A stretch of DNA of 64,000 nucleotides from Paragordius varius (taxonomy: Eukaryota > Animalia > Nematomorpha): contig OZ176050.1 of NCBI GenBank assembly GCA_964247055.1, positions 3,906,001-3,970,000 of the forward strand, in the 5' to 3' direction. Shown here one piece after another: positions 2,573 through 62,456 of this stretch. The position numbers were made by a program, and so were the translations under genes. Below the pieces are notes generated by a model. It made no database searches and had not been told where the DNA came from. It saw nothing but the letters and a program-made list of their open reading frames with translations. Position 1 is the stretch's first letter, and every line of letters starts with the position of its first letter.

Positions 2573-5348
2573 ATGTTATATAATAATTATACAACTATAT
2601 TCCCAATAATTTCAATTATAATTGTAAATTTATTCCTTGCTTGTGAATCATCGAAAAAATCGGGAGAATGCCCAACTTTACCCAGGAATATTGATTGTAC
2701 TTGTAGGTTAGACTCAACGAACGTTTACCTCGTTTATTGCCTAAGCGTATTTCGCACGGAACACATTCACACGGTAATCAAGGCTTTTGATACAGCTAAA
2801 CACCGAGATATACCCATTAAGTTTTGGATTAAAAATTCCAAGTTTGACAGCATTGACACCATCAAATTACCTGACACCAATGTTAAAATTGTGGGCTTGG
2901 AATTTTGGTACACATCCATTCGACAAATGTCTGAGACTGCGTTTGATTCTATAAGTGCTGATCTCCAAGAATTAGTTGTTATGGATACTGCGACCTCAGT
3001 AATGGACACGGATAGCATAAAATTGATTTTAAAAGCCATGACTCAGCTCAAAAAACTTAAAAAAATTATCTTATACTTTCCAGATTTACTCCATTTTGAT
3101 ATCGGATATTTGAATAATTTCAGTGAATTGGAGAATTTGGAGCTTGAAATACCTCATGTAATGTATGTACATGGAGATCATCTCAATTTACCGAAATTAA
3201 AAAGGTTTATCTTTCAAAGTAAAGTATCCCATATTCCACCCGAAATCAGCAATCTCACTAGCATACAAATATTATCCATATATTCAAATCACCTCAACGA
3301 TATCAATGACGAAGCATTTAGATTTTTGATAAATGTTAAGAAATTAGTCCTATCATCTGGTCTAGAGAAAGTCGCTATGAATTTTACATCCAATTTTAAG
3401 GATTTACAGATTTTAGACTTAACCAACAATCATTTAACCACTCTTCCATCGTTTTGCAAAACAGCGGTAACAAGGAATAGGTATGATGTAAATATTAATT
3501 AAAATATTGCTCTTTTATTTAATTTAAAGTATGAAACTATACATAACAAGGTTAATTTTAAACTTGATTTAATTGATTTTTCATTTGAATTTCTATTGGC
3601 ATTTTAAAGATTTATTTTATTTCTACTTAAGTGTTGCAATCGCCATAGTAGTGACCAATGACTGACTTATCATTAAAATGCGTGTCCGCATTATATTTGT
3701 AATTTATTTCATAGTGAAAAAATATTTAAGTTTTTTAACGCCTGAGTTGAGCTTTTTTCCTATTTGTTTTTTAGGAAGAATGAGAGCTTCATTAATTCAA
3801 TTATCTAAGGTCGGTCATAACATAAACTAAAAACTAAACGTTATATATATATAACTGTATTTAGACATTTGTCCAATTTATCCGCAATCATTTTGTCTCA
3901 AAATTTATTGACTGATGATAGTCTGATACCAGAAGTTTTTGCGGGCTGTACCAATTTAACACATTTAATATTGGATGCAAATAAGATTGAATCACCTCCA
4001 AACGATTTTTTGATGGATTCACAATCTACCCTTACGACCTTACACATGTCCTATAACCATATGAAACGGGTTCCAGTTGGTTTACTTAGGAATCTCCCTA
4101 ATTTAACATATTTAAATTTGGGATATAATAATATTATTGAGGTGGCACCCCATGAATTCAGTCAAAATGTAAAATTACAACATCTCGTTTTGTATGGTAA
4201 TAAAATTAAAAGATTTGAACTGCTTGATGATAAGATTCTTACCGAGATTAATACAATATGGTTAGGAAATAATCTTCTGACGGAATTTCCCTTCGAATCC
4301 TTTCAAAATTATCAAAATCTCACCAGCCTTCTATTAAACAAAAATAAAATTAAATGTATCGACGGGCTTCTGGATTTGATGAAAGTTAGTCCGAAAAAAC
4401 GCATATATTTACATGGTAAGACTCTCTTTTATTTGGTGTATTATTACAGTAAAAATTTGAATTAATATGCAGACTAAACGTAAGTAAACAACAAATTTTA
4501 ATTGAAAAGACAACCAATCAGAGTTTTTAAAACCATGATTTTTAATACTCATATAATTAATTTATATAATTAAGCGTAAATCAATTTCATCAACCATTCG
4601 ACAACCCAAAACGATGTACATTAAAAAAATTAAGATTGGTTTTCTTTTTTAAAAAAATAGTCTCAGTCTGTGTATTATCAATTTTTCTGTTTTTATCCTA
4701 TTAAAAACATTTTCTTAAGAAAAAATAAATTAATCCATTATTTTAATTCGATGCATATCAAATTTTTTTATAGATAACCCCATTGTGTGTGATTGTGACA
4801 CTTATAATTTGGCATATTGGTACAACAATGAATATAAATTAAACCAAGGACAGAAAACGGTGTATATGGAATATATGGATTATATTGATGTTAGTGAAGC
4901 GTCTAGTCTTGGAATCATAGGAACGTGTTCTAATCTCGATTACAACATAACAGAAATATCGTTAACTGATGCAAGCTTAATTGAAAAACTCTCCCCCCTT
5001 TGTGATTCGGAAAATACCTTGTTAAGCAATCGTTCAACGACAAAATTGTTCAACAAGCAACCCGATCAACGTGAGCTGCATAAATGTAAACAAAATACAT
5101 ACATTTTTGGTTCCCTATTTGTCCTGACTGTTTTAATGCTTGGCATATTAGTCATGCAACGTTTTGGATTAATTCCAAACACATTGAAACAAAAAACGGT
5201 GGGATTATTTCAAGCGTCTCCCCTTTCCCTTAACACGAAAAATAATCATCGTTATGCCAATGACATTTGGCAGAATGGCAGGGAAACATCTGATCGAATA
5301 CATTTCAAAAATCATGAATTTGTTCCTCCTGAAACTTCTACCACATAA
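2573..5348 (+). CDS. LRR single-pass transmembrane receptor-like protein, copy 1; join(2573..3480,3865..4415,4774..5348), 677 aa, short stalk
   Basis: Three ORFs join in frame through GT-AG introns (phase 2 AG|gtatga...tttag|A gives RNR-HLS; phase 1 G|gtaaga...atag|AT gives LH-DNPIVCDC). Hydrophobic N-terminus, LRRNT CPTLPRNIDCTC, about 15 LxxLxLxxN repeats, LRRCT, TM helix YIFGSLFVLTVLMLGILVM, about 60-aa tail. Confidence 0.9.
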
Positions 5349-5997
5349 TAAATTAATAATTATTAATTAATCGGATCCCGCTCATAAAATGTGATAGATT
5401 TATATTGCTATCAATATATAGAAAATTTGTATATTATATTAAATAATTATCAATTAACATTTTCACGTGTTATTTATATGATATTATCAATTCTTTAGTT
5501 GTTGTATTCATGTATCATGGTTTAATAGTTGACTTTAAAAGTTTAATAATTTAAAAATTGGCCATTTTTAATTTATTAAATTTTTAAGAATTGATCACCT
5601 ATTTTATTCTGTTTTGAAATGAATCTGGAAGTCTATTAGTGCGTGCTTGGAGCATATTTTGTTTAATTATTAGATTTTGGTGGCGGTAATCTTACATCTT
5701 GAATTGCAACCAAATTTAAAATGTAATTATAAAAATAATATTAATAATTATGGCTAATAACAGTAACGTTCAAAAATTTGTAATACGCTGCAGTGTCAGT
5801 AGCCCCTTTTTTGAACAAAATTAAAATGATGTTTTAAAAATCATCAAACATTTTCTTTTTGCATAAGAATGACTAATAAATTCATTTATGTTGCAGCAAA
5901 TAACCTTTTTAGCCCCAAAAAACGGAAATTTGGGATTTTTTAGATTTTAGCGTCCAAAATGTATCCCTTCAACTTAAGGTACTTTATTGTTCTAAAG

Positions 5998-6400
5998 CAG
6001 GGCTGTTCAACAAGTGATTCCGGAGCCACTTGTGGCTCTTTGAAAATTTTGAGTGGCTTATTATGAATAAATTTTTTTTACAAAAGGTTTAATTGTTGAA
6101 TAGCGATGTAAAATTTTTATTTTTTTGTAAAAATTTTAAATTGATTTCCATAAATTTTTTTATAATATTATAAAAAATTTTTCATCAATTAATCATTTGT
6201 TTCCTTACAATCTGAAATTTTTTTGAATACTTGCCATGGTTAACTTTTTTGGTAATTATTTAGTGAAGAGCCATATTTCTGAAAATCACAGTCTCATTTT
6301 TAATAGAGCAATACCCATATTATTAGAGTTATAAATTACGTATTTGAAAATATTTGCAATTGTTAAATGTTTTTTTATTTATTTTTATAACCACATGGGT
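5998..6400 (+). mobile_element. Eroded hAT end in the LRR 3' flank (also at 24644 and 48172)
   Basis: Starts CAGGGCTGTTCAAC...GAGCCACTTGTGGCTC after ttctaaag, resembling the terminus of the hAT at 14141-17042. Right end not found, so the end coordinate is approximate. Confidence 0.5.
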
Positions 6401-6452
6401 CATTGTAAAAGGAATATGTCCAAATCTAGGTGAAACAAGCAGTGCTTTGTAT

Positions 6453-7802
6453 GTTGTTATAAGCTAGTCATGTAGTGACTCTTGGCTTTCTCATAGATTA
6501 GTGTTCTCCATTTTTGACGATCCTGTGATTCTCTCAACAATTGAAGAAAGGTTCGGTTTGTTATTGCTTTAAGCATGTCGATCCACCGCTTTTTGGGTCG
6601 GCCCCTTCTGCGGGTGCCATCTACCAACCCAAAGAGTATGCTTTTTTCTAACGAGTCGGATCGCAGGATATGACCCAGATATTTTAGCTGTTTAAAGGTT
6701 ATTAAATCGTGAAGTAAAAATTCGGGTTTGATGAGGTTGAGGATGTAAGAATTGGAGATGTGGGCTTTCCAGGAGATTCTCAATATTTTTCGAGAGCACC
6801 ACATTTGAAAAGAGTTTATGCGGGCTTTGTCAATGGATTTGCATATCCATGATTCGGACCCATAAATTGCCACGGGGTATATCATCGCCTTCAATTGGCA
6901 AGTTTGGCTGGAAGTCTTATGACCGACGAGTTCCAAATTTTGGACAGTTTACCCATAGTAGCACGTCCCAATGCTAGCCGTGCTCGTATGTCGGGACCAG
7001 AGCTACCGTCGGATGTAATTATGGAGCCTAAATATTTACAGTGATCGGTTAGTTCGATGGGGGAGTTGTTGATTGTAAATGGTAGTTGTGGAGCGTTTAG
7101 GAGTATTATTTTAGATTTAGCTGGGTTCAGCTTAAGACCCATCAAACTTGCTTCGATGGTGAGATTATTTAAAAGATAGGTCATGTCCGTGTGGGATTCT
7201 GACAAGAGAATGGTGTCGTCGGCCCGGAGATTGCAAATAGTAAGACCACCGATCCGTGCCCCAATATGGGGAAAGTTACAATTGCGTATTAATGTTTCTG
7301 TGTATAAGTTAAATAGGAGGGGAGAAAGGACACATCCTTGTCTCACACCTCTGAGAATAGGAAACCAGTCGGTGGGACCGAATTGGGTTTTAATCGCAGC
7401 TGTTTGTCTAGAATACAGCGATTGAAGCAAGAGTATTATGTGCGGGGAAACTCCGGAGGATCGTAATATTCTCCATAGGCAGTCGTGGTTGACTGTATCG
7501 AATGCCATACTGAAGTCTAAAAAGCAGCAGTATAGACTTTTCCCAAATTCTTTGTATCTTCTAATTATTGTATTAAGATTAATTATGTGATTAGTAGTGT
7601 TTTTCTTTGCTCTAAAGCCAGCCTGCACCTCAGATATTTCATAGTCCAGCGAGGATGAGATTCTTTTGAGTATAATCTTGAGAAGAAGTTTGGATAGTTT
7701 ATTAGTGATAGCGATCATTCTATAGTTCTGACAAAGATGGGGATTTCCCTTTGGAGAAAAGATTTAATCTAATCATCCGGCCAAATACAGGTTTGAAAAA
7801 CT
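6453..7802 (-). mobile_element. 5'-truncated RTE-clade LINE (RT and C-terminal region, frameshifted)
   Basis: Motifs GVRQGCVLSPLLFNLY, (Y)ADDTILL, IYPVAIYGSESW, KYLGHILR, GTRRRGRPKKRWID. Stop codon directly beside a short AAC tail. Candidate TSD tttgtat (6446-6452, 7803-7809). Absent at the paralogous site near 30125. Confidence 0.88.
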
Positions 7803-7949
7803 TTTGTATATTGAACTTTATTATTACGTTAATTTAATACAATTACAAAAGATTCCTCAGTAGCCCATATATATATTTCTAATATATTCTTTAATATAAT
7901 TAAAAATTGCATGCTAAACACAGTTCGGCAGGAATTTAAGTGGGGTAAT

Positions 7950-12249: not shown

Positions 12250-12504
12250 TAATATGAATCGTGATGAAAATACAAAACAAAATAATTTATTAAGAATGTG
12301 ATATTTATACTTTTTAATTAATGATAATTTTAACATGTATGTGCGTCACATTTGTAAAATTATGTCTTTTATTCTACGAATATATATATATAAGAATTCC
12401 ACGAAGAATGACGCACGAACATAAACGCCAAACGCGATTAATATAATAATATGATGTAAGATAAAAATACAATGATGCAATGTTGTAATATCAACTACAT
12501 ATCA
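12250..12504 (-). repeat. 3' LTR of the gypsy element
   Basis: Direct repeat of 17857-18133, preceded on the minus strand by the polypurine tract GAGGATGAAGAGAA (12505-12518). Confidence 0.9.
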
Positions 12505-19456: not shown

Positions 19457-22255
19457 ATGTTATATCAAAATAATTATACAGCTATACTATTAATAATCTC
19501 AATTATAATTGTAAATTTATTCGCTGTTTATGAATCATCAAAAAAATCGGCAGGATGCCCAACTTTACCCAGGAATGTTGATTGTACTTGTATTTTAGAA
19601 TCGACGAACGATTACCTCGTTTATTGCCAAAGCGTATTTCACACGGAACACATTCACACGGTAATCAAGGCTTTTGATACACCTAAACACCGAGATATAC
19701 CCATTAAGTTTTGGATTTTAAATTCCAAGTTTGACAGCATTGACACCATCAAATTACCTGACACCAATGTTAAAATTGTGGGCTTGGAATTTTTGTACAC
19801 ATTCATTCGACAAATATCTGAGACTGCGTTCGATTCTATAAGTGCTGATCTCCAAGAATTAGTCGTTATGGATGATACTGCGACCTCAGTTATGCACACG
19901 GATAGCATAAAAATAATTTTGAAAGCCATGACTCATCTTAAAAAACTTAAAAAAATTATCTTATACTTTCCAGATTTATTCCATTTTGATATCGGATATT
20001 TGAATAATTTCAGTGAATTGGAGGATTTGCAGCTTGAAATACCTCATGTAATGTATGTACATGGAGATCATCTCAATTTACCGAAATTAAAAAGGTTTAT
20101 CCTTCAAAGTAAAATATCTCATATTCCACCCGAAATCAGCAATCTTACTAGCATACAAATATTATCCATATATTCAAATTACCTAAACGATATCAATGAC
20201 GAAGCATTTAGATTTTTGATAAATGTTAAGACATTAGACCTATCTTCTGGTCTTGAGAAAGTCGCTATAAATTTTACATCCAATTTTAAGGATTTACAAA
20301 ATTTAGACTTAGCCAATAATCATTTAACTACTCTGCCATCGTTTTGCAAAACAGCGGTAACAAGGAATAGGTATGATGTAAATATTAAAATTGCCCTTTT
20401 ATTTAATTTAAAGTATGAAACTATACATAACAAGGTTAATTTTAAACTTGATTTAATTGATTTTTCATTTGAATTTCTATTGGCATTTTAAAGATTTATT
20501 TTATTTCTACTTAAGTGTTGCAATCGCCATAGTAGTGACCAATGACTGACTTATCATTAAAATGCGTGTCCGCATTATATTTGTAATTTATTTCATAGTG
20601 AAAAAATATTTAAGTTTTTTAACGCCTGAGTTGAGCTTTTTTCCTATTTGTTTTTTAGGAAGAATGAGAGCTTCATTAATTCAATTATCTAAGGTCGGTC
20701 ATAACATAAACTAAAAACTAAACGTTATATATATATACAACTGTATTTAGACATTTGTCCAATTTATCCGCAATCATTTTGTCTCAAAATTTATTGACTG
20801 ATGATAGTCTGAAACCAGAAGTTTTTGCGGGCTGTACCAATTTAACACATTTAATATTGGATGCAAATAAGATTGAATCACCTCCAAACGATTTTTTGAT
20901 GGATTCACAATCTACCCTTACGAGCTTACACATGTCCCATAACCATATTAAACGGGTTCCAGTTGGTTTATTAAGGAATCTCCCTAATTTAACATCTTTA
21001 AATTTGGGATATAATAATATTATTGAGGTGGCACCCCATGCATTCAGTCAAAATGCAAAATTACAAAATCTCAATTTAAATGGTAATAAAATCAAGAGAT
21101 TTGAACTGCTTGATGACAAGATTCTTACCAATATTAATACAATATGGTTAGGAAATAATCTTCTGACGGAATTTCCCTTTGAATCCATTCAAAATTATCA
21201 AAATCTCACCAGCCTTATATTAAACAAAAATAAAATTAAAAGTATCGACGGGCTTCTGGATCTGATCAAAGTTAGTCCGAAAAAACGCATATATTTACAT
21301 GGTAAGACTCTCTTTTATTGGGTGCATTATTGCAGTAAAAATTTGAATTAATATGCAGACTAAACGTTAAAAGTAAACAACAAATTTTTATTGAAAAGAC
21401 AACCAATCAGGTTTTTTAAAACCATGATTTTTAATACTCGTATAATTAATTTATATAATTAAGCGTATATCAATTTACATCAATCCCATTCGGCAACCCA
21501 AAACGACGTACATTAAAAAGATTAAGATTGGTTTTCTTTTTTAAAATATAGTCTCAGTCTGTGTATTATCAATTTTCTGTTTTTATCCTATTAAAAACAT
21601 TTTTTTAAGAAGAAATAAATAATTCCATTATTTTTCGATGCATATCAATTTTTTTATAGATAATCCCATTGTGTGTGATTGTGACACTTATAATTTGGCA
21701 TATTGGTACAACAATGAATATAAATTAAACCAAGGACAGAAAACGGTGAATATGGAATACATGGATTATATTGATGTTAGTGAAGTGTCTAGTCTTGAAA
21801 TCATAGGAACATGTTCTAATCTCGATTACAGCATAACAGAAATATCGTTAACTGATGCAAGCTTAATTGAAAAACTCTCCCCCCTTTGTGATTCGGAAAA
21901 TAAACCACCAAACGTTATTATACGTGCTAAATCAACCGTTCGACAAATAGATACAAGTACTCCCAGTAAATATATTTCGGATTTAACAACCTCGTCTTCG
22001 ATAATTTCCTCCTTGTTAAGCAATCGTACAACGACAAAATTGGTCAACAAACAACCCGATCAACGTGAGCTGCAAAAATATAAACAAAATACATACATTT
22101 TTGGTTCCCTATTTGTCCTGACTGTTTTTATGCTTGGCATATTAATCATGCAACGTTTTGAATTAATTCCAAACACATTTAAACAAAAAACGGTGGGATT
22201 ATTTCAAGCGTCTCCCCTTTCCCTTAACACGAAAAATAATCAAGTAAACAAGTAA
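19457..22255 (+). CDS. LRR transmembrane receptor-like protein, copy 2; join(19457..20370,20751..21301,21660..22255), 686 aa, tail truncated by a retroposon
   Basis: Same splice sites and phases as copy 1; exons 914, 551 and 596 bp keep frame. Ends ...TKNN-QVNK*, with QVNK* read from the insertion; the original 33-aa end lies at 23788-23889. Confidence 0.88.
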
Positions 22256-22444
22256 ACAAGTAAAGGGTGTAGCGTCGGAAGATCGTCGGCCACCTGCCGT
22301 CAAGGCAATCCCTACCCACCCGTAATGCATTGAGCTTCAGAGCGGGGAAACACATCGGAATTTGGGGTTGACGTTAGTATCTACATACATAAATAAAAGC
22401 CTTCATGTTAGATGTGTTAATGGGAGTTAGTATAGTTAATAAGC

Positions 22445-22476
<32 letters not shown>

Positions 22477-23776
22477 TTTTTAAAAGAAATGTTAATATCG
22501 CCTTGTTAGGTAAATAAAAGCAATATTTGAGTTTAAATAACCGTACAAACAGGGTTTGATTACTCCATAAAGTAATGTCAAAGGTCTATATTGGATCAAA
22601 TGTAGAGTTAATTAAGCTCTTATCTTTGGTGTGGAAGGGGATCTTCTTTTGCTTCTAAATGAGTGTGGCCTTTAAGGTAGACCAATTTTGGAGATCTTAG
22701 ACATTACAAGCGTCAACGTTACCCCTTCGTGCGACCATGTTTCAGTTGTACCTTCAACTGGGACGCTAACCCGGGATAAGTGGTCGTTGACCTTGCTCTG
22801 AGCTAAGTCTCAACTCCGACCAACAGAGATGTCGGAGATTGGTAACCAGCCCTGCTCAAATATCAGCGGCTCCAACATTGCTTCCCAGGACGTCGTCCCA
22901 CAATAATTGGCTAATAGTCTACTCAGAGTCGCGTCTTGCATGCTTTATACATTCAGTGGTACATTTTGTTCGTGGAATATCTCTGTGAAGCAGTCTATAT
23001 TCTTAAGGTGTTTACCATTAACAGATTTTGTTTTAAATATTACATCAATACTAACTGACTTTAACAGAGCGTTGTAAAATAAAAATTTATACCTTAATTA
23101 CATGAATACTAACTGACATTAACAGAGCGTTGTCAAATAAAAATTTATACCTTAATTGCATCAATACTGACATTAACAAAGCGTTGTAAAATAAAAATGT
23201 ATACCTTAATTACATGAATACTAACTGACATTAACAGAGCGTTGTGAAATAAAAATTTATACCTTAATTACATGAATACTAACTGACATTAACAGAGCGT
23301 TGTCAAATAAAATTTATACCTTAATTACATCAATATTAACTGACATTAACAGAGCGTTGTAAAATAAATTTCATACCTTATCCAGCAGTGGGAATTAACC
23401 TTAAATAATACCGACTTCGCAATAGTATCATTCAATCTGGAGCAAAGTATCCGGTTCAAATAAAAGTTGAATATTGGTAATCAGCCCTCAAATATCAGCG
23501 GTTCCGATGTCATCGTCATATAGCAGGGAAGTTTTGCGTTGGTTTTCAACGGGATAGGATTAGTAACTCTGGTGCGTTTCCTCTTGCCAAGAGCGTAAAA
23601 GTGATAGAGGTTTTCGGGGTATAATCGTAATCGCGTTCATCAGCGCAGCTTCAAAAGCTCAGTTGGCCACAATTATTAAAGTTTTTTCGGTAAGTTTTAA
23701 AGATCGGGGTCATTAAGGATTTACGGTCATTGTTCGATTCTAGCCTGGAGAGGATGTTGCGTCAGCCGGTGCCATC
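22243..23776 (-). mobile_element. 1.5-kb non-coding retroposon (non-LTR/SINE-like) in the last coding exon of copy 2
   Basis: 13-bp TSD CGAAAAATAATCA (22230-22242, 23777-23789); minus-strand 3' tail (TTTACTTG)n with a stem-loop before it; no long ORF; absent from copies 1, 3 and 4. Confidence 0.85.
23041..23380. repeat. 58-bp minisatellite x6 inside the retroposon
   Basis: Unit TACATGAATACTAACTGACATTAACAGAGCGTTGTCAAATAAAAATTTATACCTTAAT (54-58 bp), contiguous with no spacers. Confidence 0.95.
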
Positions 23777-25214
23777 CGAAAAATAATCATCGTTATGCCA
23801 ATGACATTTGGCAGAATGGCAGGGAAACATCTGATCGAATACATTTCAAAAATCATGAATTTGTTCCTCCTGCAACCTCTACCACATAATAAACTAATTA
23901 ATATTAATTGATCGGAAGATTACCGCTCATAAAATGTGATAGATTTTTATTGCTATCAATATATAGAAAATTTGTATATTATAATAAATAATTATCAATT
24001 AACATTTTCTCGTGTTATTTATATGATATTATCAATTCTTTAGTTGTTGTATTTCTGTAACATGGTTTAAGAGTTAAATTTAAAAAGTTAATAGAAATTT
24101 TTTAATATAGGCCATTTTCAATGGATTAAATGTTTAAGAATTGATCTCCTATTTTTTTAAATTCTGGTTTTGAGATAAATCTCGAAATCTATTAGTGCGT
24201 CCTATGATAGGACAAGACCTGTGATTCAATGTTTTTTCAGATAATGGGTCGCATATTATAAGATCAAGTGTTTTAATAGAAGACTTGGTTTTAATGGAGC
24301 ACATTTTGTTTAATTATTAGACTTTGGTGGCGGTAATCTTGCATGAATTGGAACCAAATTTAAATGAAATTATAAAAATAATATTAATAATTATGACTAA
24401 TAACAGTAACGTCTAAAAATTTGTAATACGCTGCAGTGTCAGTAGCGCCTTTTTTGAACAAAATTAAAATGATGTTTTAAAAATCATCAAACATTTTCTT
24501 TTTGCATACGAATGACTAATAAATTCATTTATGTTGCATTTGCAAATAACCTTTTTAGCCCCAAAAAATGTAAATTTGTGATTTTTTAGATTTTAGCGTC
24601 CAAAATGTATCCCTTAAACTTAAGGTACTTTATTGTTCTAAAGCAGGGCTGTTCAACAGGTGGTTACGGAGCCACTTGTGGCTCTTTGAAAATTTTGAGT
24701 GGCTTATCAAAAAAAATTGAACAAAATTTTTTTTATAAAAAGTTTAATTATTGAATAGCGATGTAAAATTTTTATTTTTTTTTAAAAAAATTTAAATTGA
24801 CTTCCATAAATTTTTTTACAAATTTTATTAATTTCCTCGAATTCATTTAATCATTTATTCCTTTACAATCTGAGAATCTTTAGAATGCCTCCCATAGTAA
24901 ACTTTTTTTGGTAAATATTTAGTGAAGAACCTATTTTTAATATAGCAGGGCTTCTTAAACTTTTGTAGTTCCCGACCCCATTTATGATTGCGAGTTTCTT
25001 AACGACCCCAACAAATAAAAAAAGAAAAATAATAATTTCTTCAAAATAACAATTGGAAATTTTGTTGATAATATTTATCAGGATTTTTGAGAGATTGAGA
25101 AAAACATATCTACATTTTTTATAAATTTGTATAACATTTTCTTATTCATTGTAAATTTATACAAGATACTAGCTGGCCCTGTCACGCTTCAGTGTGGCGT
25201 CATCTCACCGATAA

Positions 25215-28200
25215 CATTGTGACACAACTTTTTCTGAATCTAAATTTTTTAATATTTTCTGATTTCTTATGGTATCAGATTTGTGAAAAAAAATTTTTAC
25301 TTACCCAGGTCGTTTTCGAGATATGGGACTTTTTCCATATTTAGACATACAATATTTTCTCGTTTGTAAATATTTTTCACTAGGTAAACAAATTATATGT
25401 GGCTTATAATACAAATTTTATTATAGACCACCAATTTATCCTTAAAATAAAAAATTAACTCAAAATATTCAATACTTTTTGTTCCAGGGGCAAAAACCCT
25501 CAAAAACGGGGGAACTTAACATTTTTTGACACAAATATTTTTCATCATCTTATTAAATGAAAACACATTTTATTTTATGTTCTTGGATGTTAATAATGTT
25601 TGTTTAATTATAATTATCATTAGGTAATAGCTTTGTCGACTTTTATTTTAAAAAATAAATTTAATTTTTACATCTTTTTTGCTGTTTTTTTATCTAAAAA
25701 AGCTAAATTTTACTCAGCTGCATATAATATATTCTTTATTACATATGATATTTTTAAATATTTCTTACACTTAAATATACTCTATATCAGCTTTTTCATC
25801 AAGAATATATTATTATATACCCAAAATGTACAAAAAATATAATTATCACCCACATTTTTTAAACGCCGCAGTTTTAATAGGGCCGCAGGCATGCATTTAA
25901 TTTTAGGTTACGAGTTTTTTAAACGATGTAGTGTTTAAATCTAAAATGAACCCAAAAAGCGGCATAGGTTTTATTGCCAACTTTTTCTTAAAATTTTTTG
26001 GGAAATTAAAAAATAACAATTACCTGGAATTAGTTAATCGACTCTTTCTATAGGATGGGTATGTATGTCAGAATACTCATGTTATTTAAACATTTAAATT
26101 CTTTTTTATCCAAAAATATAGGATGCCGCTTGAATCTAAAGCTACATATAGTGAATTCCCATTGTGTGTTTCCCAAAGACGCCATCACAGAAAGAACCGA
26201 AAAGGGACACAATTTTAAATCTTTCGAAAAAACTATCGAAATAATATAAATTTAATTTGCGATTATAAATTTATATATATATGTATATAATAAATTAATT
26301 ATTATTTTATTTTACTTTCATTCAAAATCAAGATAGATTATCCGTGTCTTTTTGACCAAAATAAACACTTTCTTAATTATCCACTCTAATTAATAGAAGC
26401 ATTAAATTACATGTTTTCACTCGTCATAGCGGTCATGTTATATAACCTGTCTCGCCATAGTACTCTATCTATGGCGTCTTCTGCATTAAGCTCGTATTCT
26501 GCCAACTTTTTTTACTGTACACCCATTTCGATTTAGGCCTCCCACGTCCTCGTTTTTCTTCAACTATATGACTATCTATTATTTTTGCAATATGATTAGA
26601 ATCTCTCCTTTCAATGTGCCGGAACCAACGTACCCTATTTTTTGACATTATATTCACTATTGATTTAACATCTGTGCTCCCACGAATAAATCGATTCTCA
26701 ATTCTATAGTCTGTTGTTACCCCACACATCATTCTAAGCATTTTCAGTTCAGTCACGTTGAAATGTCTTTCTTCGGATTTTTTGACACTCCACGTCTGTG
26801 AATTATACATAATTGTGGGTTGAACAACTGAACTGTATATCTTACCTTTCACTCTAACATCAATATATGAATCACATAAAACGCTTGAAATTTTCCAATT
26901 TATCCAACTGTTTATTTTCAAATTAATATCATCGGTCAACGATCCAACTGAACTTAGCCCCCAAATATTTGCAACTTTCTTTACCCTTCAGAAGGCTATC
27001 ATCAACTTCCATTTCATGTTGTGGACCCCCAAAAGTAATAAGTTCGGTTTTTGCTTTATTTACTTTCAGACCGTATTGATTCAGTATAATGACCCATCTG
27101 TTTACCGTTCGCTTTAACTCAGCCAATGAATCAGACAAGATGATTATGTCATCTGCATTTAAGTCAAACCTGACCTTACATTAACGACCTTGGCTATCTC
27201 GTCCATACAAATTAAAAACAATAAGGGGCTGAGTGATGACCTTGGTAGACTCCATACTTTATTGAAAAGGGCTCTGATAAACCTTGTGTTTTAATCCTAG
27301 AGGTGTGAGATTTTTACATTATTTAACAACTTGATATAACTTTCTGGGACCTTTTTACGACGGAGACTTCAACAAATAGTTTATCTAGGAATCCTGTCAA
27401 AAGCCTTTTCAATCTCAATTAAAACCCCGTGTAACTCTTTCAATGAGAATTATATATTGAATTATACGCAAATCCTCATTTAATGCTTCAATTAATTAGA
27501 GTGAATATTAAAGAAAGTGTATATTTTGGTCAAAAAGACACGGATAATCTATCTTGGTTTTGAATGAAAGTAAAATAAAATAATAATTAATTTATTATAT
27601 ACATATATATATAAATATATAATCGCAAATTAAATTTATATTATTTCGATAGTTTTTTCGAAAGATTTAAAATTGATGTCCCTTTTCGGCTCTTTCTGTG
27701 ATGGCGTCTTTGGACACACAATGGGAATTCACTATATGTAGCTTTAGATTCAAGCGGCATCCTATATTTTTGGATAAAAAAGAATATAAATGTTTAAATA
27801 ACATGAGTATTCTGACATACATACCCATCCTATAGAAAGAGTCGATTAACTAATTCCAGGTAATTGTTATTTTTTAATTTCCCAAAAAATTTTAAGAAAA
27901 AGTTCGCAATAAAACCTATGCCGCTTTTTCTTTGGGTTCATTTTAGATTTAAACACTACATCGTTTAAAAGACTCGTAACCTAAAATTAAATGCATGCCT
28001 GCGGCCCTATTAAAACTGCGGCTTTTAAAAAATGTGGGTGATAATTATATTTTTTGTACATTTTGGGTATGTAATAATATATTCTTGATGAAAAAGCTGA
28101 TATAGAGTATATTTAAGTGTAAGAAATATTTAAAAATATCATATGAAATAAAGAATATATTATATGCAGCTGAGTAAAATTTAGCTTTTTTAGATAAAAA

Positions 28201-28679
28201 AAACAGCAAAAAAGATGTAAAAATTAAATTATTTTTTAAAATAAAAGTCGACAAAGCTATTACCTAATGATAATTATAATTAAACAAACATTATTAACAT
28301 CCAAGAACATAAAATAAAATGTCTTTTCATTTAATAAGATGATGAAAAATATTTGAAAATGTTAAGTTCCCCCGTTTTTGAGGGTTTTTGCCCCCTGGAA
28401 CAAAAAGTATTAATTTTGACTTAATTTTTTTTATTTTAAAGATAAATTGTTGGTCTATAATAAAATTTGTATTATAAGCCACATATAATTTGTTTACCTA
28501 GTGAAAAATATTTACAAACGAGAAAATATTGTATGTCTAAATATGGAAAAAGTCCCATATCTCGAAAACCTGGGTAATTAAAATTTTTTTGCACAAATGT
28601 GATCATAATACCATAAGGAATCAGAAAATATTAATAAATATGGATCCAGAAAATTGACCCCAAATTTTGTTGCATAGTG
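25215..28679. mobile_element. Palindromic Chapaev3-like (CMC) element with arms of about 1.2 kb (25215-26407, 27478-28679)
   Basis: CACTGTG-type termini and 3-bp TAA TSD. Each arm holds a transposase C-terminal remnant NF(L)GN.KNNNYLELVNRL..YRM-GCRLNLKLHIVNSH, split by a 63-bp GT-AG intron (26059-26121). Confidence 0.8.
26408..27420 (-). mobile_element. RTE-clade LINE 3' fragment in the loop of the palindrome
   Basis: Motifs SLSPLLF..MD, ADDIIIL, KGKIYSSVVQP, RWFRHIERR, KRGRGRPK; frameshifted. Confidence 0.85.
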
Positions 28680-30198
28680 TAATTATTCTTAATAATTTGC
28701 AAAAAATAGAGTTAATGGAGGTTAAATAATAATAATAAAAAACATATTTAATAAAAATAATGTCTTTAATTATTCTTTTACGGGTTTTTGCATAGGCTGA
28801 AATATTGTTTCGAAATAGACCAAATTAAATGTGTTCCTTATAAAATATTCAACCATTGGATTTATTTTAAGATTTTCGTTTTATGAAGTCATGGATAAAA
28901 GTTCTAATTTGAAATTGTGTTCATACAGCTGGGATCAAGGGATATATTGTGGTTCCTTTTTAAAGGAAAAAATGATATTATACAAATTCCCCAGAAACGT
29001 GTTTAACTGAACTCGTATGGCTTCTTAGGTTTTTCGAAAGTTAGCTCCAAAACTACGCCTATTTTGTTTGGCGTCTCCGTTTTAAACTGATAGACCCCTA
29101 CCCATTTGCCTTTATAGGGCAAATATTCGGAATCATCTTTGATACCATCGTCTCATGGGTTATTCAAAAAACCTCAACACTAAATCGTTATATGATGGCG
29201 TTTTAGGGCATAAAGGCATTAAATTAACGGCTAATAAAAGAACCCGATTTTAATTTTTACTTAGTTACGGGTAATATAACCTTTAATGAGCTAATATGGC
29301 TTCTAAACAGATAGCCGCTAAAACTGCGCCACAATATAGAAATTGCGTTGCAGCCAATATTAAAAAAACGGAAGACTAAAATTTTTTCCTTAGAATAACT
29401 CGAATCCTCAGTAAATTTTAACGGTATCATACCCTGGGCAAAAAATTATTTAGTTTTTTTTTTAAAAAAATGGCATCTTACGGGGGGAACGGGTAAAAAG
29501 AGAGCCTAAATTAAAAAAAGTAAGCCGAGTAAGTTTGAAGCAATCAAAAAAACGTAAAAATAATCATATTTGAAATCGAATGGTTCAACACGTTTTCCGG
29601 AAAATTGTCTAAAAGACACGATTTTCTGGACTTGTGTTTTCAAAAAAAACCGTTTAACTGGGAGCCTAATTCAAAAAAGAACGAAGCTATTGTCGGGGCA
29701 TCATTAATGATTGAATTTTTTTGACACTTGGATGGATTTACCGCGGTTTTTCGGAAACAGATTACAAAGCCAGTATTTTCCATTTTTATAAATATATAGA
29801 TTATAATGATTGGAATAGATGCTGGTATAAACAGTCTTTCCGAACCAGAAGATTGTATGATATATTTATTTACGATGAATGTTATTTTTTTTATAACAAT
29901 AATTTTACAATTTAAAAAACATTTTTTGTTAAATTGTATTTTTATCACTCGCGACCCCAAATGGGGTCGCGACCCATAGTTTAAGAAGCCTGATATAGCA
30001 ATACCCATATTATTGGAGTTATAAATTACGTATTTTGCAATTGGTAAATGTTTTTTTATTTATTTTTCTAACCACAGGGGTCATTATAAAAGGAATTTGT
30101 TCAAATCTAGGTGAAACAAGCAGTGCGTTGTTAATATTGGTCTTTATTAAGACGTCGGATTTTATTTTAATACAATTGATTCCTCTGTAGCCCATACA

Positions 30199-42224: not shown

Positions 42225-45200
42225 ATGTTATATCAAAATAATTATACAGCTATACTATTAATAATCTCAATTATAATTGTCAATTTATTCGCTGTTTATG
42301 AATCATCAAAAAAATCGGCAGGATGCCCAACTTTACCCAGGAATGTCGATTGTACTTGTAGGGTAGAATCAACGAACGTTTACCTCGTTTATTGCCAAAG
42401 CGTATTTCACATGGAACACATTCACACGGTAATCAAGGCTTTTGATACACCTAAACACAGAGATATACCCATTAAGTTTTGGATTTTAAATTCCAAGTTT
42501 GATAGCATTAACGCCATCAAATTACCTGACACCAATGTTAAAATTGTGGGCTTGGAATTTTTGTACACATCCATTCGACAAATGTCTGAGAGTGCGTTTG
42601 ATTCTATAAGTGCTGATCTCCAAGAATTAGTTGTTATGGATGATACTGCGACCTCAGTTATGCACACGGATAGCATAAAATTGATTTTAAAAGCCATGAC
42701 TCAACTCAAAAAACTTAAAAAAATTATCTTATACTTTCCAGATTTACTCCATTTTGATATCGGATATTTGAATAATTTCAGTGAATTGGAGGATTTGCAG
42801 CTTGAAATACCTCATGTAATGTATGTACATGGAGATCATCTCAATTTACCGAAATTAAAAAGGTTTAAACTTCAAAGTAAAGTATCCTATATTCCACCCG
42901 AAATCAGCAATCTTACTAGCATACAAATATTATCCATATATTCAAATCACCTAAACGATATCAATGACGAAGCATTTAGATTTTTGATAAATGTTAAGAA
43001 ATTAGTCCTATCTTCTGGTCTTGAGAAAGTCGCTATGAATTTTACATCAAATTTTAAGGATTTACAAAATTTAGACTTAGACAATAATCATTTAACTACT
43101 CTTCCATCGTTTTGCAAAACAGCGGTAACAAGGAATAGGTATGATGTAAATATTAAAATATTGCCCTTTTATTTAATTTAAAGCAGTGGTACTCACCAAA
43201 AAAATTTGACGGGCCAAATAAAATAAATTTTTTTTCTCGAGGGCCATGAACCTTCTAATGGCAAATATTCCATAGCTCTTTGACACATATGCACTTTATA
43301 CTCTAAATCAGCACGATTTTTTTGCGTATTGCATGATCCAACTAAAAATCGTTTTGCACCATTTAGTTTAAAAAATTAAAATATTTTGATATTAACTAAT
43401 AACAAGCCAATTTTAATACGTTTGTCCATATTCATCGGTTAAGAGATTTCTGTATGTATTCTTAACATACTTCATTTAGGAATATGTGGTCTTACACGTG
43501 TAAGTTGAGGGAAAAACAGTTAGAATAACTTAAGCACAATTTTTTTATTTTCATATTTATTTGGCACATCTTACCAAAACTCTACATATCTTTCTACTCT
43601 ACGATTCTCCTTGAATATAGCCTCCAAGTTGGAATCATTTTTGAACTACGAATTCTTTAATCATATGCCCCTGATCAAAACCGAAATGGGTAAATCGCTT
43701 AATATTGGATACTCATGCCATGGATTTTAAATGAGTTTAAATTATTTCTTAATTCAAATCTGAATTTCATATCAATAAAAATGTTAAATGATTGTCTATT
43801 CTTAAATTAATCAAATTTTATATTTTCTTCATGAATCGTTTTAAGTGTTGGAAAATATGGGAGTGTTTATTTATAAAATCTGGATTATATTTGATTAGCA
43901 AATTGGGTTATTATTTTTCTCCCTTGAAGACCTGTATTAAAACTAAGATAAATAATGTCGCAAAGGTAGGCTAATAAAACCCACCATTTTATTAATTTCC
44001 TTGTCAATTTTTCTGTTATCTTTATGATAATAGAATTTCATAACTTTAAACAAAAAATCACAGCGGTGTACAAAAGAACATCATCAAACTCTCTGTGGAT
44101 ATCTTTCAGAAGGTTTGTGAGTATACGCGGTTTAAATTCTCTGCCACGGATGTGGTTAACCATATCTACAACCGTTTTAATTACTGATTTGAGTGATTCA
44201 TCTTTTACACGCGAAACCATGTTTTACTGCTGAATAAGGCAGTGAAAGGATTAAATATTTTGCAAATTATATTTGTTTTTCAAAAGAGGAATAAATCCTT
44301 TGTTTATTCCAATCATAAAGGGACAGATATGTGTGCAGATCACCAATTTCATAATATTATCGAAAAAAGTGCTAATTAATTCGAGAAAACTTCCTTTCGT
44401 GGTATTATTCATTGGTAAAAATTTTAAATATTCCTCGTTGATCATGTTGTCGTTACAAAATCTCACAAAGAGCGCACATTGAGGTGTTGTAATATCAGTC
44501 CTAAAATCAATAGCAATACTAAAATATTTGCAGTTTTTCAGAGCCAATAATGTTTTGTTAAAAATATATTTAGACATATCTTGAATGCGCCGAGCACATG
44601 TTGAATCAGAAAGTTGAAGTTTTTTTAATTTGCCCTATGATTTGATCTTTATGGAATTTATCAAAAAAAGTGCAACAATTTATTAGACATTATTAGTTGG
44701 GAATCAGTAAACAGTTTCATATTTTTTCCTTAAATATAGCAAATTTCATACGAAGCTAATGTTAAAGCTTTTTCCTGGGAAAAAGCTATGGACATTTTAG
44801 ATTTAGCCTATAATTCCTTAATCGTTTATATTTTTCGTTTTCTTCATGATTTTCGGGTAATTTACGAAAATGGATTGTAAAATGTGTATCAATATTGTAT
44901 TTTTATATAATTATGTTATCCTACATATATGGCAGTCAACAACATTTTTATTTTGAACGACAAAGAATTATTTCCCATTGTTTTTTTAGAAGCGATTTTC
45001 ATCGGATAATTTATGTTTTTTAGCAGTAGATGTCATCCTTTGAATTTATGTTTAAATATTATGGAGATTTTTTCAAAAAATTAGGATTATAATTTGAATT
45101 ATGATATAAAAAACAGCTCAAAATTTAATGATGTTTTTTTGAAAAATATTTTATGGGAATAAGTTATTAAAAATGATGCAGGATAGCAATGAAATATGGA

Positions 45201-47420
45201 AGTTTTAGTGAAATGCTTGGTTAAATACAAAAAAGGAATTCAATAAAAATGTCAAAATAGAAAAGAAAATAGAATAAAGAAACAGATTCAACGTGTGCCA
45301 ACATTTTGAAATCATTCTAATGTAAGGAAATTTTTCTACATTCAAATTGGGTGAAAACAAAATCTACGAAAATTTGTTTGTGTATTTTAAAAATTCATCA
45401 ATAAAAAAATTATAAGTATCAATATGGTCATAGGGCAATTTTAAAGCACTCTAAGGGCCGCGGTTTGAGTAATACTGATTTAAAGTATGAATCAACATAC
45501 ATAACAAGGTTATTTGTAAACTTGTATTTAATTGATTTTTCATTTGAATTTTTGTTGGCATTTTAAAGATTTATTTCTACTTAAGGTTGCAATCGCCATA
45601 GTAGTGACCAATGACTGACTTATCATTAAAATGCGTGTCTGCATTATATTTGTAATTTACCATTTCATAGTTAAAGGAGGAAAAAATATTTAAGTTTTTT
45701 TAACGCTTGAGTTGAGCTTTTTTCCTATTTGTTTTTTAAGAAGAATGAGAGCTTCATCAATTCAATTATCTAAGGTCGGTCATAACATAAACTAAAAACT
45801 AAACGTTATATATATATACAACTGTATTTAGACATTTGTCCAATTTATCCGCAATCATTTTGTCTCAAAATTTATTGACTGATGATAGTCTGAAACCAGA
45901 AGTTTTTGCGGGCTGTACCAATTTAACACATTTAATATTGGATGCAAATAAGATTGAATCACCTCCAAACGATTTTTTGATGGATTCACAATCTACCCTT
46001 ACGAGCTTACACATGTCCCATAACCATATTAAACGGGTTCCAGTTGGTTTACTAAGGAATCTCCCTAATTTAACATCTTTAAATTTGGGATATAATAATA
46101 TTATTGAGGTGGCACCCCATGCATTCAGTCAAAATGCAAAATTACAAATTCTCAATTTAAATGGTAATAAAATCAAGAGATTTGAACTGCTTGATGACAA
46201 GATTCTTACCAATATTAATACAATATGGTTAGGAAATAATCTTCTGACGGAATTTCCCTTTGAATCCATTCAAAATTATCAAAATCTCACCAGCCTTATA
46301 TTAAACAAAAATAAAATTAAAAGTATCGACGGGCTTCTGGATCTGATCAAAGTTAGTCCGAAAAAACGCATATATTTACATGGTAAGACTCTCTTTTATT
46401 GGGCGCATTATTGCCATAAAAATTTGAATTAATATGCAGACTAAACGTTAAAAGTAAACAACAAATTTTTATTGAAAAGACAACCAATCAGGTTTTTTAA
46501 AACCATGATTTTTAATACTCGTGTAATTAATTTATATAACTAAGCGCATATCAATTTACATCAACCCCATTCGGCAAACCAAAACGACGTACATTAAAAA
46601 AATTAAGATTGTTCTTTTTTAAAATATAGTCTCAGTCTGTGTATTATCAATTTTCTGTTTTTATCCTATTAAAAACATTTTCTTAAGAAGAAATAAATAA
46701 TTCCATTATTTTTCGATGCATATCAATTTTTTTATAGATAATCCCATTGTGTGTGATTGTGACACTTATAATTTGGCATATTGGTACAACAATGAATATA
46801 AATTAAACCAAGGACAGAAAACGGTGGATATGGAATATATGGATTATATTGATGTTAGTGAAGTGTCTGGTCTTGAAATCATAGGAACGTGTTCTAATCT
46901 CGATTACAAAATAACAGAAATATCGTTAACTGATGCAAGCTTAATTGAAAAACTCTCCCCCCTTTGTGATTCGGAAAATAAACCACCAAACGTTATTATA
47001 CGTGCTAAAACAACCGTTCGACAAATAGATACGAGTACTCCCAGTAAATATATTTCGGATTTAACAACCTCGTCTTCGATAATTTCCTCCTTGTTAAGCA
47101 ATCGTACAACGACAAAATTGGTCAACAAACAACCCGATCAACGTGAGCTGCAAAAATATAAACAAAATACATACATTTTTGGTTCCCTATTTGTCCTGAC
47201 TGTTTTTATGCTTGGCATAATAATCCTGCAACGTTTTGGATTAATTCCAAACACATTTAAACAAAAAACGGTGGGATTATTTCAAGCGTCTCCCCTTTCC
47301 CTTAACACGAAAAATAATCATCGTTATGCCAATGACATTTGGCAGAATGGCAGGGAAACATCTGATCGAATACATTTCAAAAATCATGAATTTGTTCCTC
47401 CTGCAACCTCTACCACATAA
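42225..47420 (+). CDS. LRR transmembrane receptor-like protein, copy 3; join(42225..43138,45832..46382,46738..47420), 715 aa, full length
   Basis: Same splice sites and phases; exons 914, 551 and 683 bp; complete stalk and tail; intron 1 enlarged by a hAT. Confidence 0.9.
43184..45477 (-). mobile_element. hAT (SPIN/Charlie-like) in intron 1 of copy 3, decayed transposase
   Basis: 8-bp TSD ATTTAAAG (single in copies 1 and 2); imperfect TIR CAGTGGTACTCA / CAGTATTACTCA; motifs YFSIAIDFRTDIT, VVDMVNHIRGR. Confidence 0.88.
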
Positions 47421-53552: not shown

Positions 53553-53758
53553 ATATAGCAATACCCATATTATTGGAGTTATAAATTACGTATTTTGCAA
53601 TTGGTAAATGTTTTTTTATTTATTTTTCTAACCACAGGGGTCATTATAAAAGGAATTTGTTCAAATCTATGTGAAACAAGCAGTGCGTTGTTAATATTGG
53701 TCTTTATTAAGACGTCGGATTTTATTTTAATACAATTGATTCCTCTGTAGCCCATACA

Positions 53759-60423: not shown

Positions 60424-60427
60424 TATA

Positions 60428-60726
60428 CCATTTACATTTCAAAATCACCCTCGAACTCAAATTCACCCTCGAGCAATTCAAATTCACCCTAAAAAATAAA
60501 TTATGTGATACGAATATAACTCATTATTAATATGGAAATATAACTTTCGGCATAGTTTTATATTTTTTTAGCATTTTATTTTTAAAAATATATAAAAATA
60601 TTGGTAATTTTTAATCTTAAAAAACATATACTTTATTTGAGGGTGAATTAGAATTGTTTAAGAGTGAATTAGAATTGTTCAAGGGTAAATTTGAATTGTT
60701 TAAGGGTGAATTTGAATTGTAAATGG
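60428..60726. mobile_element. Small foldback MITE with 21-bp subterminal repeats
   Basis: CCATTTAC termini flanked by TATA; unit CACCCTCGAGCAATTCAAATT on the left and inverted on the right; related right-end remnant at 35370-35470. Confidence 0.7.
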
Positions 60727-60867
60727 TATATCATATAAATAACAAGATAATATGTTAATTAATTATTTATTACAATATACAAATTTTCTATATATATTTG
60801 AGAACAATATAAAACTATCACATTTTATGAGCGGTAATCTTCCGATCAATTAACATTAATTGGTTTA

Positions 60868-62456
60868 TTATGTGGTAGAAGTTGCAGGAGGAACAAATTC
60901 ATGATTTTTGAAATGTATTCGATCAGATGTTTCCCTGCCATTCTGCCAAATGTCATTGGCATAACGATGATTATTTTTCGTGTTAAGGGAAAGGGGAGAC
61001 GCTTGAAATAATCCCACCGTTTTTTGTTTAAATGTGTTTGGAATTAATCCAAAACGTTGCAGGATTATTATGCCAAGCATAAAAACAGTCAGGACAAATA
61101 GGGAACCAAAAATGTATGTTTTTTGTTTATATTTCTGCAGCTCACGTTGATCGGGTTGTTTGTTGACCAATTTTGTCGTTGTACGATTGCTTAACAAGGA
61201 GGAAATTATCGAAGACGAGGTTGTTAAATCCGAAATATATTTACTGGGAGTACTCGTATCTATTTGTCGAACGGTTGATTTAGCACGTACAATAACGTTT
61301 GGTGGTTTATTTTCCGAATCACAAAAAGGGGAGAGTTTTTCAATTAAGCTTGCATCAGTTAACGATATTTCTGTTATGTTGTAATCGAGATTAGAACACG
61401 TTCCTATGATTTCAAGACCAGACACTTCACTAACATCAATATAATCCATATATTCCATATGCACCGTTTTCTGTCCTTGGTTTGATATATATTCATTGTT
61501 GTACCAATATGCCAAATTATAAGTGTCACAATCACACACAATGGGGTTATCTATAAATTAGATGTGCATTGAATTAAAACAATGGATTAATTTATTTTTT
61601 GTTAAGAAAATGTTTTTAATAGGATAAAAACAGAAAAATTGATAATACACAGACTGAGACTATATTTTAAAAAGGAAACCAATCTTAATTTTTTTAATGT
61701 ACGTCGTTTTGGTTTGCCGAATGGGGTTGATGTAAATTGATATGCGCTTAATTATATAAATTAATTATACGAGTATTAAAAATCATGGTTTTAAAAAACC
61801 TGATTGGTTGTCTTTTCAATAAAAATTTGTTGTTTACTTTTAACGTTTAGTCTGCATATTTTAAATTTTTACTGTAATGATACACCCAATAAAAGAGAGT
61901 CTTACCATGTAAATATATGCGTTTTTTCAGGCTAACTTTGATCAGATCCAGAAGCCCGTCGATACTTTTAATTTTATTTTTGTTTAATATAAGGCTGGTG
62001 AGATTTTGATAATTTTGAATGGATTCAAAGGGAAATTCCGTCAGAAGGTTATTTCCTAACCATATTGTATTAATATTGGTAAGAATTTTGTCATCAAGCA
62101 GTTCAAATCTCTTGATTTTATTACCATTTAAATTGAGAATTTGTAATTTTGCATTTTGACTGAATGCATGGGGTGCCACCTCAATAATATTATTATATCC
62201 CAAATTTAAAGATGTTAAATTAGGGAGATTCCTTAATAAACCAACTGGAACCCGTTTAATATGGTTATGGGACATGTGTAAGCTCGTAAGGGTAGATTGT
62301 GAATCCATCAAAAAATCGTTTGGAGGTGATTCAATCTTATTTGCATCCAATATTAAATGTGTTAAATTGGTACAGCCCGCAAAAACTTCTGGTTTCAGAC
62401 TATCATCAGTCAATAAATTTTGAGACAAAATGATTGCGGATAAATTGGACAAATGT
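60868..62456 (-). CDS. LRR transmembrane receptor-like protein, copy 4 (inverted, 5'-partial); complement(join(60868..61550,61906..62456))
   Basis: Exons 2 (551 bp) and 3 (683 bp) are intact with conserved splice sites. Intron 1 runs off the window, so exon 1 cannot be assessed. Confidence 0.85.

Follow-up and report, generated by a model that had tools for sequence, protein, structure and literature searches.

A cluster of leucine-rich repeat membrane receptor genes, so far found only in hairworms, whose paralogues vary preferentially on the predicted binding face

A 64-kb stretch of the genome of the horsehair worm Paragordius varius (contig OZ176050.1, positions 3,906,001 to 3,970,000), hereafter the window, contains a cluster of four paralogous genes for leucine-rich repeat (LRR) membrane receptors. 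The window is AT-rich, with a GC content of about 29%, and the cluster is set among the remains of transposons. The paralogues were located with a list of open reading frames (ORFs) and by comparison of the window with itself, and are numbered copies 1 to 4. Copies 1, 2 and 3 are complete and lie on the plus strand; copy 4 lies on the minus strand and is represented in the window by exons 2 and 3. Each gene is composed of three exons separated by GT-AG introns, and the frame is open in every visible exon. An initial annotation, made from the sequence alone, had given the same coordinates and frames and had placed exon 1 of copy 4 outside the window, all of which is correct. The receptor family is real and previously undescribed, belongs to a well-known kind of protein and has so far been found only in hairworms, namely here and in Gordionus sp. 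m RMFG-2023 (G. montsenyensis), referred to below as Gordionus. The exons are as follows.

2573..3480, plus strand: copy 1 exon 1, with a predicted signal peptide, cysteine N-cap and LRR1-9; phase 2 end, donor GTATGA; Pfam LRR_8 match; AlphaFold model of the copy 3 equivalent with a predicted local distance difference test (pLDDT) score of 81
3865..4415, plus strand: copy 1 exon 2, with LRR10-17, canonical 24-residue repeats; phase 1 end, donor GTAAGA; LRR_8 match at E=1e-23; model of the copy 3 equivalent with pLDDT 91
4774..5348, plus strand: copy 1 exon 3, with a four-cysteine C-cap, shortened stalk, predicted transmembrane helix, tail with the conserved motif, and stop
19457..20370, plus strand: copy 2 exon 1
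20751..21301, plus strand: copy 2 exon 2
21660..22255, plus strand: copy 2 exon 3, shortened by an insertion, with the conserved tail motif lost
42225..43138, plus strand: copy 3 exon 1, modelled with AlphaFold
45832..46382, plus strand: copy 3 exon 2, modelled with AlphaFold
46738..47420, plus strand: copy 3 exon 3, with the full stalk, predicted transmembrane helix and tail
61906..62456, minus strand: copy 4 exon 2
60868..61550, minus strand: copy 4 exon 3, tail-to-tail with copy 3

The splice junction sequences of copy 1 recur nearly identically in all copies. Exon 1 ends in phase 2 (...AAT AG/GTATGA) and the A that opens exon 2 completes an Arg codon, while exon 2 ends in phase 1 (CAT G/GTAAGA) and the AT that opens exon 3 completes an Asp codon, followed by NPIVCDCD. 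The encoded proteins are about 677-713 amino acids (aa) in length. Intron 1 of copy 3 spans 2693 nt (43139-45831) and exceeds that of copies 1 and 2 by some 2.3 kb. The extra sequence partly recurs in intron 1 of copy 4 (62457-64000), and at least that part is therefore older than the inverted duplication of the two copies. Exon 1 of copy 4 is placed beyond base 64000 because the homology with intron 1 of copy 3 reaches the end of the window.

The proteins were analysed exon by exon, with searches and AlphaFold folds run on single-exon translations. The product of exon 1 begins with a hydrophobic segment, followed by a cysteine N-cap (CPTLPRNxDCTC...C) and nine LRRs that are partly irregular, and exon 2 adds eight canonical 24-residue LRRs to give a total of 17 in each protein. 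In exon 3 a four-cysteine C-cap is succeeded by a stalk rich in Ser and Thr, then by some 22 hydrophobic residues (IFGSLFVLTV...) with basic ones after them, and lastly by a tail of about 65 aa. After the start Met, residues 8-25 are hydrophobic and are modelled as a helix with low pLDDT, and the Gordionus homologues begin likewise; the hydrophobic stretch of exon 3 also aligns with one in Gordionus. The N-cap, modelled as a beta-hairpin, follows the pattern CPxLPxNxDCxC...C that is shared with Gordionus, and neither genus shows any change in the four C-cap cysteines of exon 3 (C5, C7, C51 and C76). Pfam LRR_8 matches exon 2 (E=1e-23) and exon 1 (E=7e-07), and the Pfam LRRNT and LRRCT models gave no match to the cap regions.

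A Pfam scan of exon 3 found no family and hence no TIR domain, for which a tail of about 65 aa leaves no room, and the position of the stop matches the ends of the Gordionus proteins; the TIR-less membrane LRR protein put forward in the initial annotation is thereby borne out. Conserved between the two hairworm genera is a tail motif of the form W-x-x-G ... T-S-D-[R/H]-I-x-F-x-N-[K/H]-E.

The AlphaFold models were built on small alignments that included the Gordionus homologues and reached a pLDDT of 91 for exon 2 and of 81 for exon 1 outside the predicted signal peptide. DSSP assigned one short strand per repeat at positions 3-5, reaching position 8 in the N-terminal repeats, which shows that the LRR register used for the counts below is right. 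Foldseek gave LRR ectodomains a probability of 1.00, and the fold neighbours of the exon 1 model are the capped neuronal ectodomains of NGL-3, LINGO-1 and the Nogo receptor (TM-score 0.55-0.62). The closest solved proteins by sequence are likewise generic (IGFALS, TLR3, LGR4, LRIG1 and LRRC15), and the PDB searched by sequence and by fold yielded generic LRR ectodomains and no specific family.

Relatives were sought by an exhaustive HMMER search with exon 1 against 1.84 billion representative proteins. Nearly all of the 1668 matches were confined to the canonical repeats (residues 200-296), and two spanned the N-terminal half: a spider chaoptin, set aside as generic, and a Gordionus cluster. 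The exon 2 search returned only generic LRR proteins of at most 41% identity, with a length filter that leaves out full-length relatives, and the exon 3 search gave no match; LRRC37, proposed by a protein atlas as a relative of exon 3 with a score of 0.79, fell below the atlas's own reliability level and was discarded. In the searches made, the N-terminal 200 residues and exon 3 matched nothing beyond the Gordionus family, and the window's own proteins are absent from the protein collections searched.

The Gordionus relative is LOC135929095 (XP_065321669 / CAK9302814), with paralogues CAK9303162-CAK9303170. These homologues are uncharacterised and carry the automatic names 'SHOC-2-like', 'artichoke-like' and 'chaoptin-like'. 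The three exons are collinear with the full-length Gordionus isoform P0164 (723 aa), to which they show 25%, 40% and 26% identity, and BLASTP matched them to it in order along the protein (exon 1 at E=1e-18, exon 2 at 5e-29 and exon 3 at 1e-06). The shared features comprise an N-cap CPxLPxNxxCxC, irregular N-terminal LRRs, canonical LRRs, a C-cap NP[I/L]VCDCD, the predicted transmembrane stretch and the tail motif. Intron 2 is also shared: in the window genes (CAT G/GTAAGA ... TATAG/AT AAC CCC) and in the Gordionus gene model (CAA G/GTAGTC ... TATTAG/GA AAT CCC) it is of phase 1 and lies one codon before NP. Intron 1, in contrast, is a feature of the window genes, and the Gordionus genes carry about 30 extra residues in its place; the residues flanking the junction are contiguous in the alignment with the Gordionus protein. 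With P0164 as the query, four further Gordionus clusters came up at some 55% identity, followed by a sharp fall to generic LRR proteins (E ~1e-22), namely chaoptin, artichoke, IGFALS and Toll, which match at 24-30% identity over partial length. The only homologues that the exon 1 and P0164 searches recovered are those of Gordionus, in support of the lineage-specific family that had been postulated, and these searches disclosed no one-to-one orthology with a conserved developmental LRR protein.

Consecutive accessions and the fetched DNA place the Gordionus genes in an array on a single chromosome, with at least two genes per strand, including one tail-to-tail pair like copies 3 and 4 of the window. 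The Gordionus paralogues are older, sharing 55-80% identity as compared with about 92-99% among the window copies. The gene for P0164 lies elsewhere on the same chromosome beside a frame-broken copy, a diverged sequence (45-64% identity) 6 kb downstream (L001:18714-20610) that matches over three frames and is probably a pseudogene, with micro-introns as another possibility. The RefSeq protein XP_065321402 ('chaoptin-like', 1105 aa; L002:3480-9178 on OX940786.2) seems to join first exons (L002:3480-5120 and 6735-8339) that belong to two adjacent genes of the family, which would mean that the array holds more genes than annotated. The model of another Gordionus gene, P0286, skips about 20 nt between two exon pieces (L003:10333-10354). 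The Gordionus loci have a GC content of 28.7%, similar to that of the window, and the Gordionus genome as a whole one of 26.9% (bioRxiv 10.1101/2023.06.26.546503). The library of papers searched holds no description of LRR families in Nematomorpha, and the Gordionus genome paper is silent on them (bioRxiv 10.1101/2023.06.26.546503).

The initial annotation had drawn attention to changes among the paralogues at the x positions of the LxxLxLxxN strand, and all of the peptide variants that it quoted (e.g. LQHLVLYGN / LQNLNLNGN / LQILNLNGN) are present. Exon 2 of copies 1 and 2 differs at exactly 15 residues, seven of which fall on LRR positions 3, 5, 7 or 8, as had been counted by hand. Across all 17 LRRs and all copies there are 39 variable residue columns; 15 of these occupy positions 3, 5, 7 and 8, which are exposed to solvent on the concave beta-sheet and make up 67 of the 401 columns (17%), an enrichment with an odds ratio of 3.7 (Fisher p=0.0005). 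The enrichment is also seen for the standard five positions 2, 3, 5, 7 and 8 (p=0.006) and when positions 3, 5, 7 and 8 are compared with non-core residues only (p=0.026). Nonsynonymous and synonymous changes number 18 and 4 on the concave positions and 26 and 22 elsewhere (p=0.023). The concentration of variation on the concave face is thus confirmed as real and beyond chance.

The same pattern is replicated independently in the separate array of Gordionus. There the mean pairwise identity is 0.50 at concave positions versus 0.73 at other non-core positions (Mann-Whitney p=7e-8), and positions 3, 5 and 7 are the least conserved of all, with mean pairwise identities of 0.40-0.49.

The ratio of nonsynonymous to synonymous substitution rates (omega, or dN/dS) was estimated for each position class by GY94 maximum likelihood, and pairwise by the method of Nei and Gojobori. 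For the LRR domain of the window copies omega is 0.44, and a value of 1 is rejected (p=0.002). The convex non-core residues have an omega of 0.36, which also differs from 1 (p=0.003), and the core residues one of about 0.2; the scaffold is under purifying selection. The concave positions, on the other hand, give an omega of 1.05, with a 2dlnL (twice the log-likelihood difference) of 0.01 relative to omega=1, a test of low power that involves 3-4 sequences and 66 codons; when bootstrapped against the synonymous rate (dS) of the whole domain, the estimate is 1.13 with a 95% interval of 0.58-2.08. In the four Gordionus array genes (dS 0.22-0.32) omega is 0.97 for the concave positions, 0.48 for the convex ones and 0.59 overall; this likelihood run omitted P0164, whose dS to the others is saturated (1.4-1.8), and P0286, whose first exon is interrupted. 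Pairs that include the Gordionus gene P0284 show a concave pairwise omega of 1.05-1.41. The concave face therefore changes about three times faster than other exposed residues, at about the neutral rate, which neutral drift or a mixture that includes selected sites explains equally well. Of the proposed diversification at the predicted ligand-binding face, the concentration of variation on concave positions holds, and positive selection does not emerge, neither concave estimate being different from 1. Whole-gene pairwise Nei-Gojobori dN/dS values range from 0.3 to 0.85. Pairwise values above 1 in exon 3 between copy 1 and copies 3 and 4 depend on 2-3 synonymous changes and were not relied on.

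Within the C-cap one codon (KTV-x-MEY) reads TAT, AAT, GAT and CAT in copies 1-4, so that all four bases occur at one site (4863-4865, 21749-21751, 46827-46829 and, on the minus strand, 61459-61461). Among copies that are 3-7% apart the chance of this happening somewhere in the gene is, by a rough estimate, a few percent, and the case is isolated.

Constraint on the reading frame is evident throughout the cluster. The exons (about 2.1 kb) have undergone three indel events among the copies (3, 3 and 108 nt), all multiples of three, as against about 20 events, mostly not multiples of three, in some 740 nt of alignable intron. Since 4.8% of random single-base changes would create a stop and about 137 substitutions separate the copies, roughly six stops are expected, and none is found. 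Together with the in-frame indels and the domain-wide omega of 0.44, this demonstrates coding constraint on the copies since their origin.

The cluster has been repeatedly rearranged. A segment that comprises copy 2 and the 8.7 kb that follow it is duplicated in the copy 3 region at 95.6% identity and includes transposons, which makes the duplication segmental; copies 3 and 4 form an inverted pair that is also 95.6% identical. Intron 1 differs by 0.5% between copies 1 and 2, the flanking exons by 5-6%, and copies 2, 3 and 4 have almost the same exon 2. Copy 1 is about 5-7% different from the other copies. This mosaic of divergence and a long identical tract are the mark of gene conversion. The features concerned are listed here.

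23777..32368, plus strand: block downstream of copy 2, duplicated with the copy 3 region 47308-55940; 95.6% identity over 8.7 kb
3511..3927, plus strand: 416-nt tract without a difference between copies 1 and 2, taking in most of intron 1 and the first part of exon 2; background divergence 4-10%
22243..23776, no strand assigned: retroposon-like insertion of 1534 bp in copy 2 exon 3, recognised by comparison with uninterrupted copy 3 at 47308-47320

A 13-bp target-site duplication, CGAAAAATAATCA, borders the copy 2 insertion on both sides, and the inserted sequence begins with a (AGTAAACA)n run. Inside are tandem repeats with a unit of about 58 bp (23039-23380), a long ORF is absent, and the element has the appearance of a non-autonomous retroposon. 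As a result of the insertion, copy 2 ends in four foreign codons and a stop in place of its last 33 residues, the conserved motif among them. The stalk of copy 1 lacks 36 aa owing to a 108-nt in-frame deletion after base 5016, and contigs with 108 extra letters at 5016/5017 occur in two sequencing runs. Birth-and-death evolution, as envisaged earlier, is well supported by the segmental duplication, the truncated copy 2, the stalk deletion and the frame-broken copy in Gordionus, with gene conversion to be added from the identical tract.

These results are probably best explained by a young cluster of hairworm-restricted type I membrane LRR proteins that is constrained in its coding sequence, is rearranging, and consists of paralogues that differ mainly on the predicted binding face. 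The 17 LRRs form a curved solenoid between the two caps, carried on the Ser/Thr-rich stalk, a predicted single transmembrane helix and the tail of about 65 aa. The proteins would be exposed at the cell surface, where the concave face may bind extracellular ligands, and the paralogues would bind different things; the ligand could come from a microbe, from the host or from the worm itself. The short tail is predicted to act through its conserved C-terminal motif, probably by recruiting a partner or co-receptor, which is proposed because the proteins possess neither a TIR nor a kinase domain. In the split HyLRR + HyTRR system of Hydra a TIR-less LRR chain is reported to act through a partner, and by analogy the hairworm chain could do the same. 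The cluster itself grows and changes as segments are duplicated in tandem or inverted, as copies convert one another, and as in-frame indels in the stalk and transposon hits occur. The immune, allorecognition or host-sensing role that the initial annotation suggested is pure conjecture.

Several observations weigh against this explanation. Ligand binding, surface location and tail function are extrapolated from LRR ectodomains in general. A concave omega of about 1 is what unconstrained residues give, and differences in binding need not be adaptive or functional. Copy 2, with its conserved tail motif lost, may be dying. The sequencing runs that hold the locus, none of which is recorded as RNA, cover the introns as deeply as the exons and contain no splice joints, and five small probable-RNA runs with the same species label contain none of the locus's sequence words. 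Contig joints that were considered as splices were rejected, being a 351-nt skip off the intron borders, a 47-nt difference within an intron and the 108-nt stalk indel. Many contigs, 163 of them in one run over 3.1 kb, match with 95-99% identity, which suggests further variants or copies, but contig depth is not readable as copy number.

The alternative that survives best, possible though distinctly less probable, is redundancy and drift, according to which the concave residues are simply the least constrained, the copies are redundant and some of them, copy 2 first, are becoming pseudogenes. The concave omega values, 1.05 in the window with its bootstrap interval and 0.97 in Gordionus, are what this alternative predicts, and omega is also raised in the signal-peptide/N-cap region and exon 3 (0.7-1.4 in some pairs). 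The truncation of copy 2 by a retroposon and the frame-broken copy in Gordionus fit as well, as do codons with multiple changes, which were tried as a sign of selection and dropped (4/66 concave versus 15/580 other codons, p=0.12). However, the convex non-core residues are solvent-exposed too and yet have an omega of 0.36-0.48, and the four copies retain open frames with in-frame indels only. Moreover, the same face is the most variable in the older Gordionus array, where the genes are still intact, and the branch to one Gordionus gene, P0284, is associated with the concave values that reach 1.41.

A stronger version of receptor diversification would have Nematomorpha-specific receptors whose concave face is under recurrent positive selection hidden within an omega of about 1, which would recognise host or microbial molecules and signal via a new motif or partner; this is considered unlikely.

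More doubtful is a conserved developmental or adhesion LRR protein of the Tartan/Capricious, LRRTM, NGL or LINGO kind that has merely been duplicated and whose variation has no role in recognition. LINGO-1, the netrin-G ligands, LRRTM, the Nogo receptor and Tartan/Capricious share with the hairworm proteins caps, 24-residue 'typical' LRRs and a short non-enzymatic tail, and have a signal peptide and a transmembrane helix, both of which are predicted here. The fold neighbours NGL-3, LINGO-1 and the Nogo receptor are neuronal adhesion ectodomains, and the conservation of the tail motif between genera would suit such a function. Unlike the LINGO-1, NGL and LRRTM group, however, the hairworm proteins have no Ig or FN3 domains and no detectable orthology, and possess an N-terminal half and tail of their own. 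Neither the exon 1 search nor that with the full-length Gordionus protein found an orthologue outside hairworms, no other match was obtained for the first 200 residues or for exon 3, and, unlike a developmental gene present as a single copy, the family forms arrays of several genes with divergent concave faces in both genera. That the frames are not genes at all, being open by chance in recently duplicated non-coding DNA, is hardly credible: the runs examined provide no RNA evidence and the copies are young (93-98% identity), but the roughly six stops expected by chance are missing, indels preserve the frame in the exons only, omega is significantly below 1, and annotated Gordionus homologues share the same intron.

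Other known systems resemble the proposed hairworm receptors in part. The Toll and Toll-like receptors have a similar capped LRR ectodomain and a transmembrane helix, as predicted for the hairworm proteins, and exon 2 has TLR3 among its best sequence matches in the PDB, whereas the tail of about 65 aa in the hairworm proteins has no TIR domain by Pfam. The variable lymphocyte receptors (VLRs) of agnathans arise by somatic completion of an incomplete germline gene from flanking LRR cassettes; the hairworm copies, in contrast, are complete germline genes with GT-AG introns, and the DNA between them is transposon sequence with no LRR cassettes. In VLRs, plant receptor-like proteins, polygalacturonase-inhibiting proteins (PGIPs) and the mosquito LRIMs, paralogue variation likewise falls on the x positions of the LxxLxLxxN strand, but the hairworm family has no plant-type repeat, shares no common descent with them and shows no omega significantly above 1. 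LRR receptor families that have expanded in single lineages and vary on the concave face are common among invertebrates and plants, and the pattern itself is therefore unsurprising.

Horsehair worms are among the least studied animal phyla. They live as parasites in the body cavity of insects and later free in water, and to our knowledge nothing is known of their host sensing and defence. A predicted surface-receptor family that is restricted to the phylum, arrayed in at least two genera, and endowed with a variable face and a conserved tail motif is a concrete candidate for hairworm sensing or defence. The locus also provides a small, clean example of array evolution by transposon-carrying segmental duplication, gene conversion and knock-out by a transposon.

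Among the transposon remains that surround the genes are three copies of a hAT-type element, 92-94% identical, with ORFs that contain the hAT dimerisation domain (Pfam PF05699).

30194-33327: hAT-type element
36157-39312: hAT-type element
53754-55940: hAT-type element

Another element is present in two copies (25230-28653 and 48758-52196), each bounded by inverted repeats of about 1.18 kb with arms that are 95% identical. Between the arms lies an ORF similar to the C-terminal portion of the ORFs with reverse transcriptase at 6457-7718. Remains of a long terminal repeat (LTR)-type retroelement occupy 11329-18133 on the minus strand and comprise a zinc-knuckle gag-like ORF and an aspartyl protease (Pfam PF13975), with direct repeats of 253-275 nt at 12252-12504 and 17859-18133.

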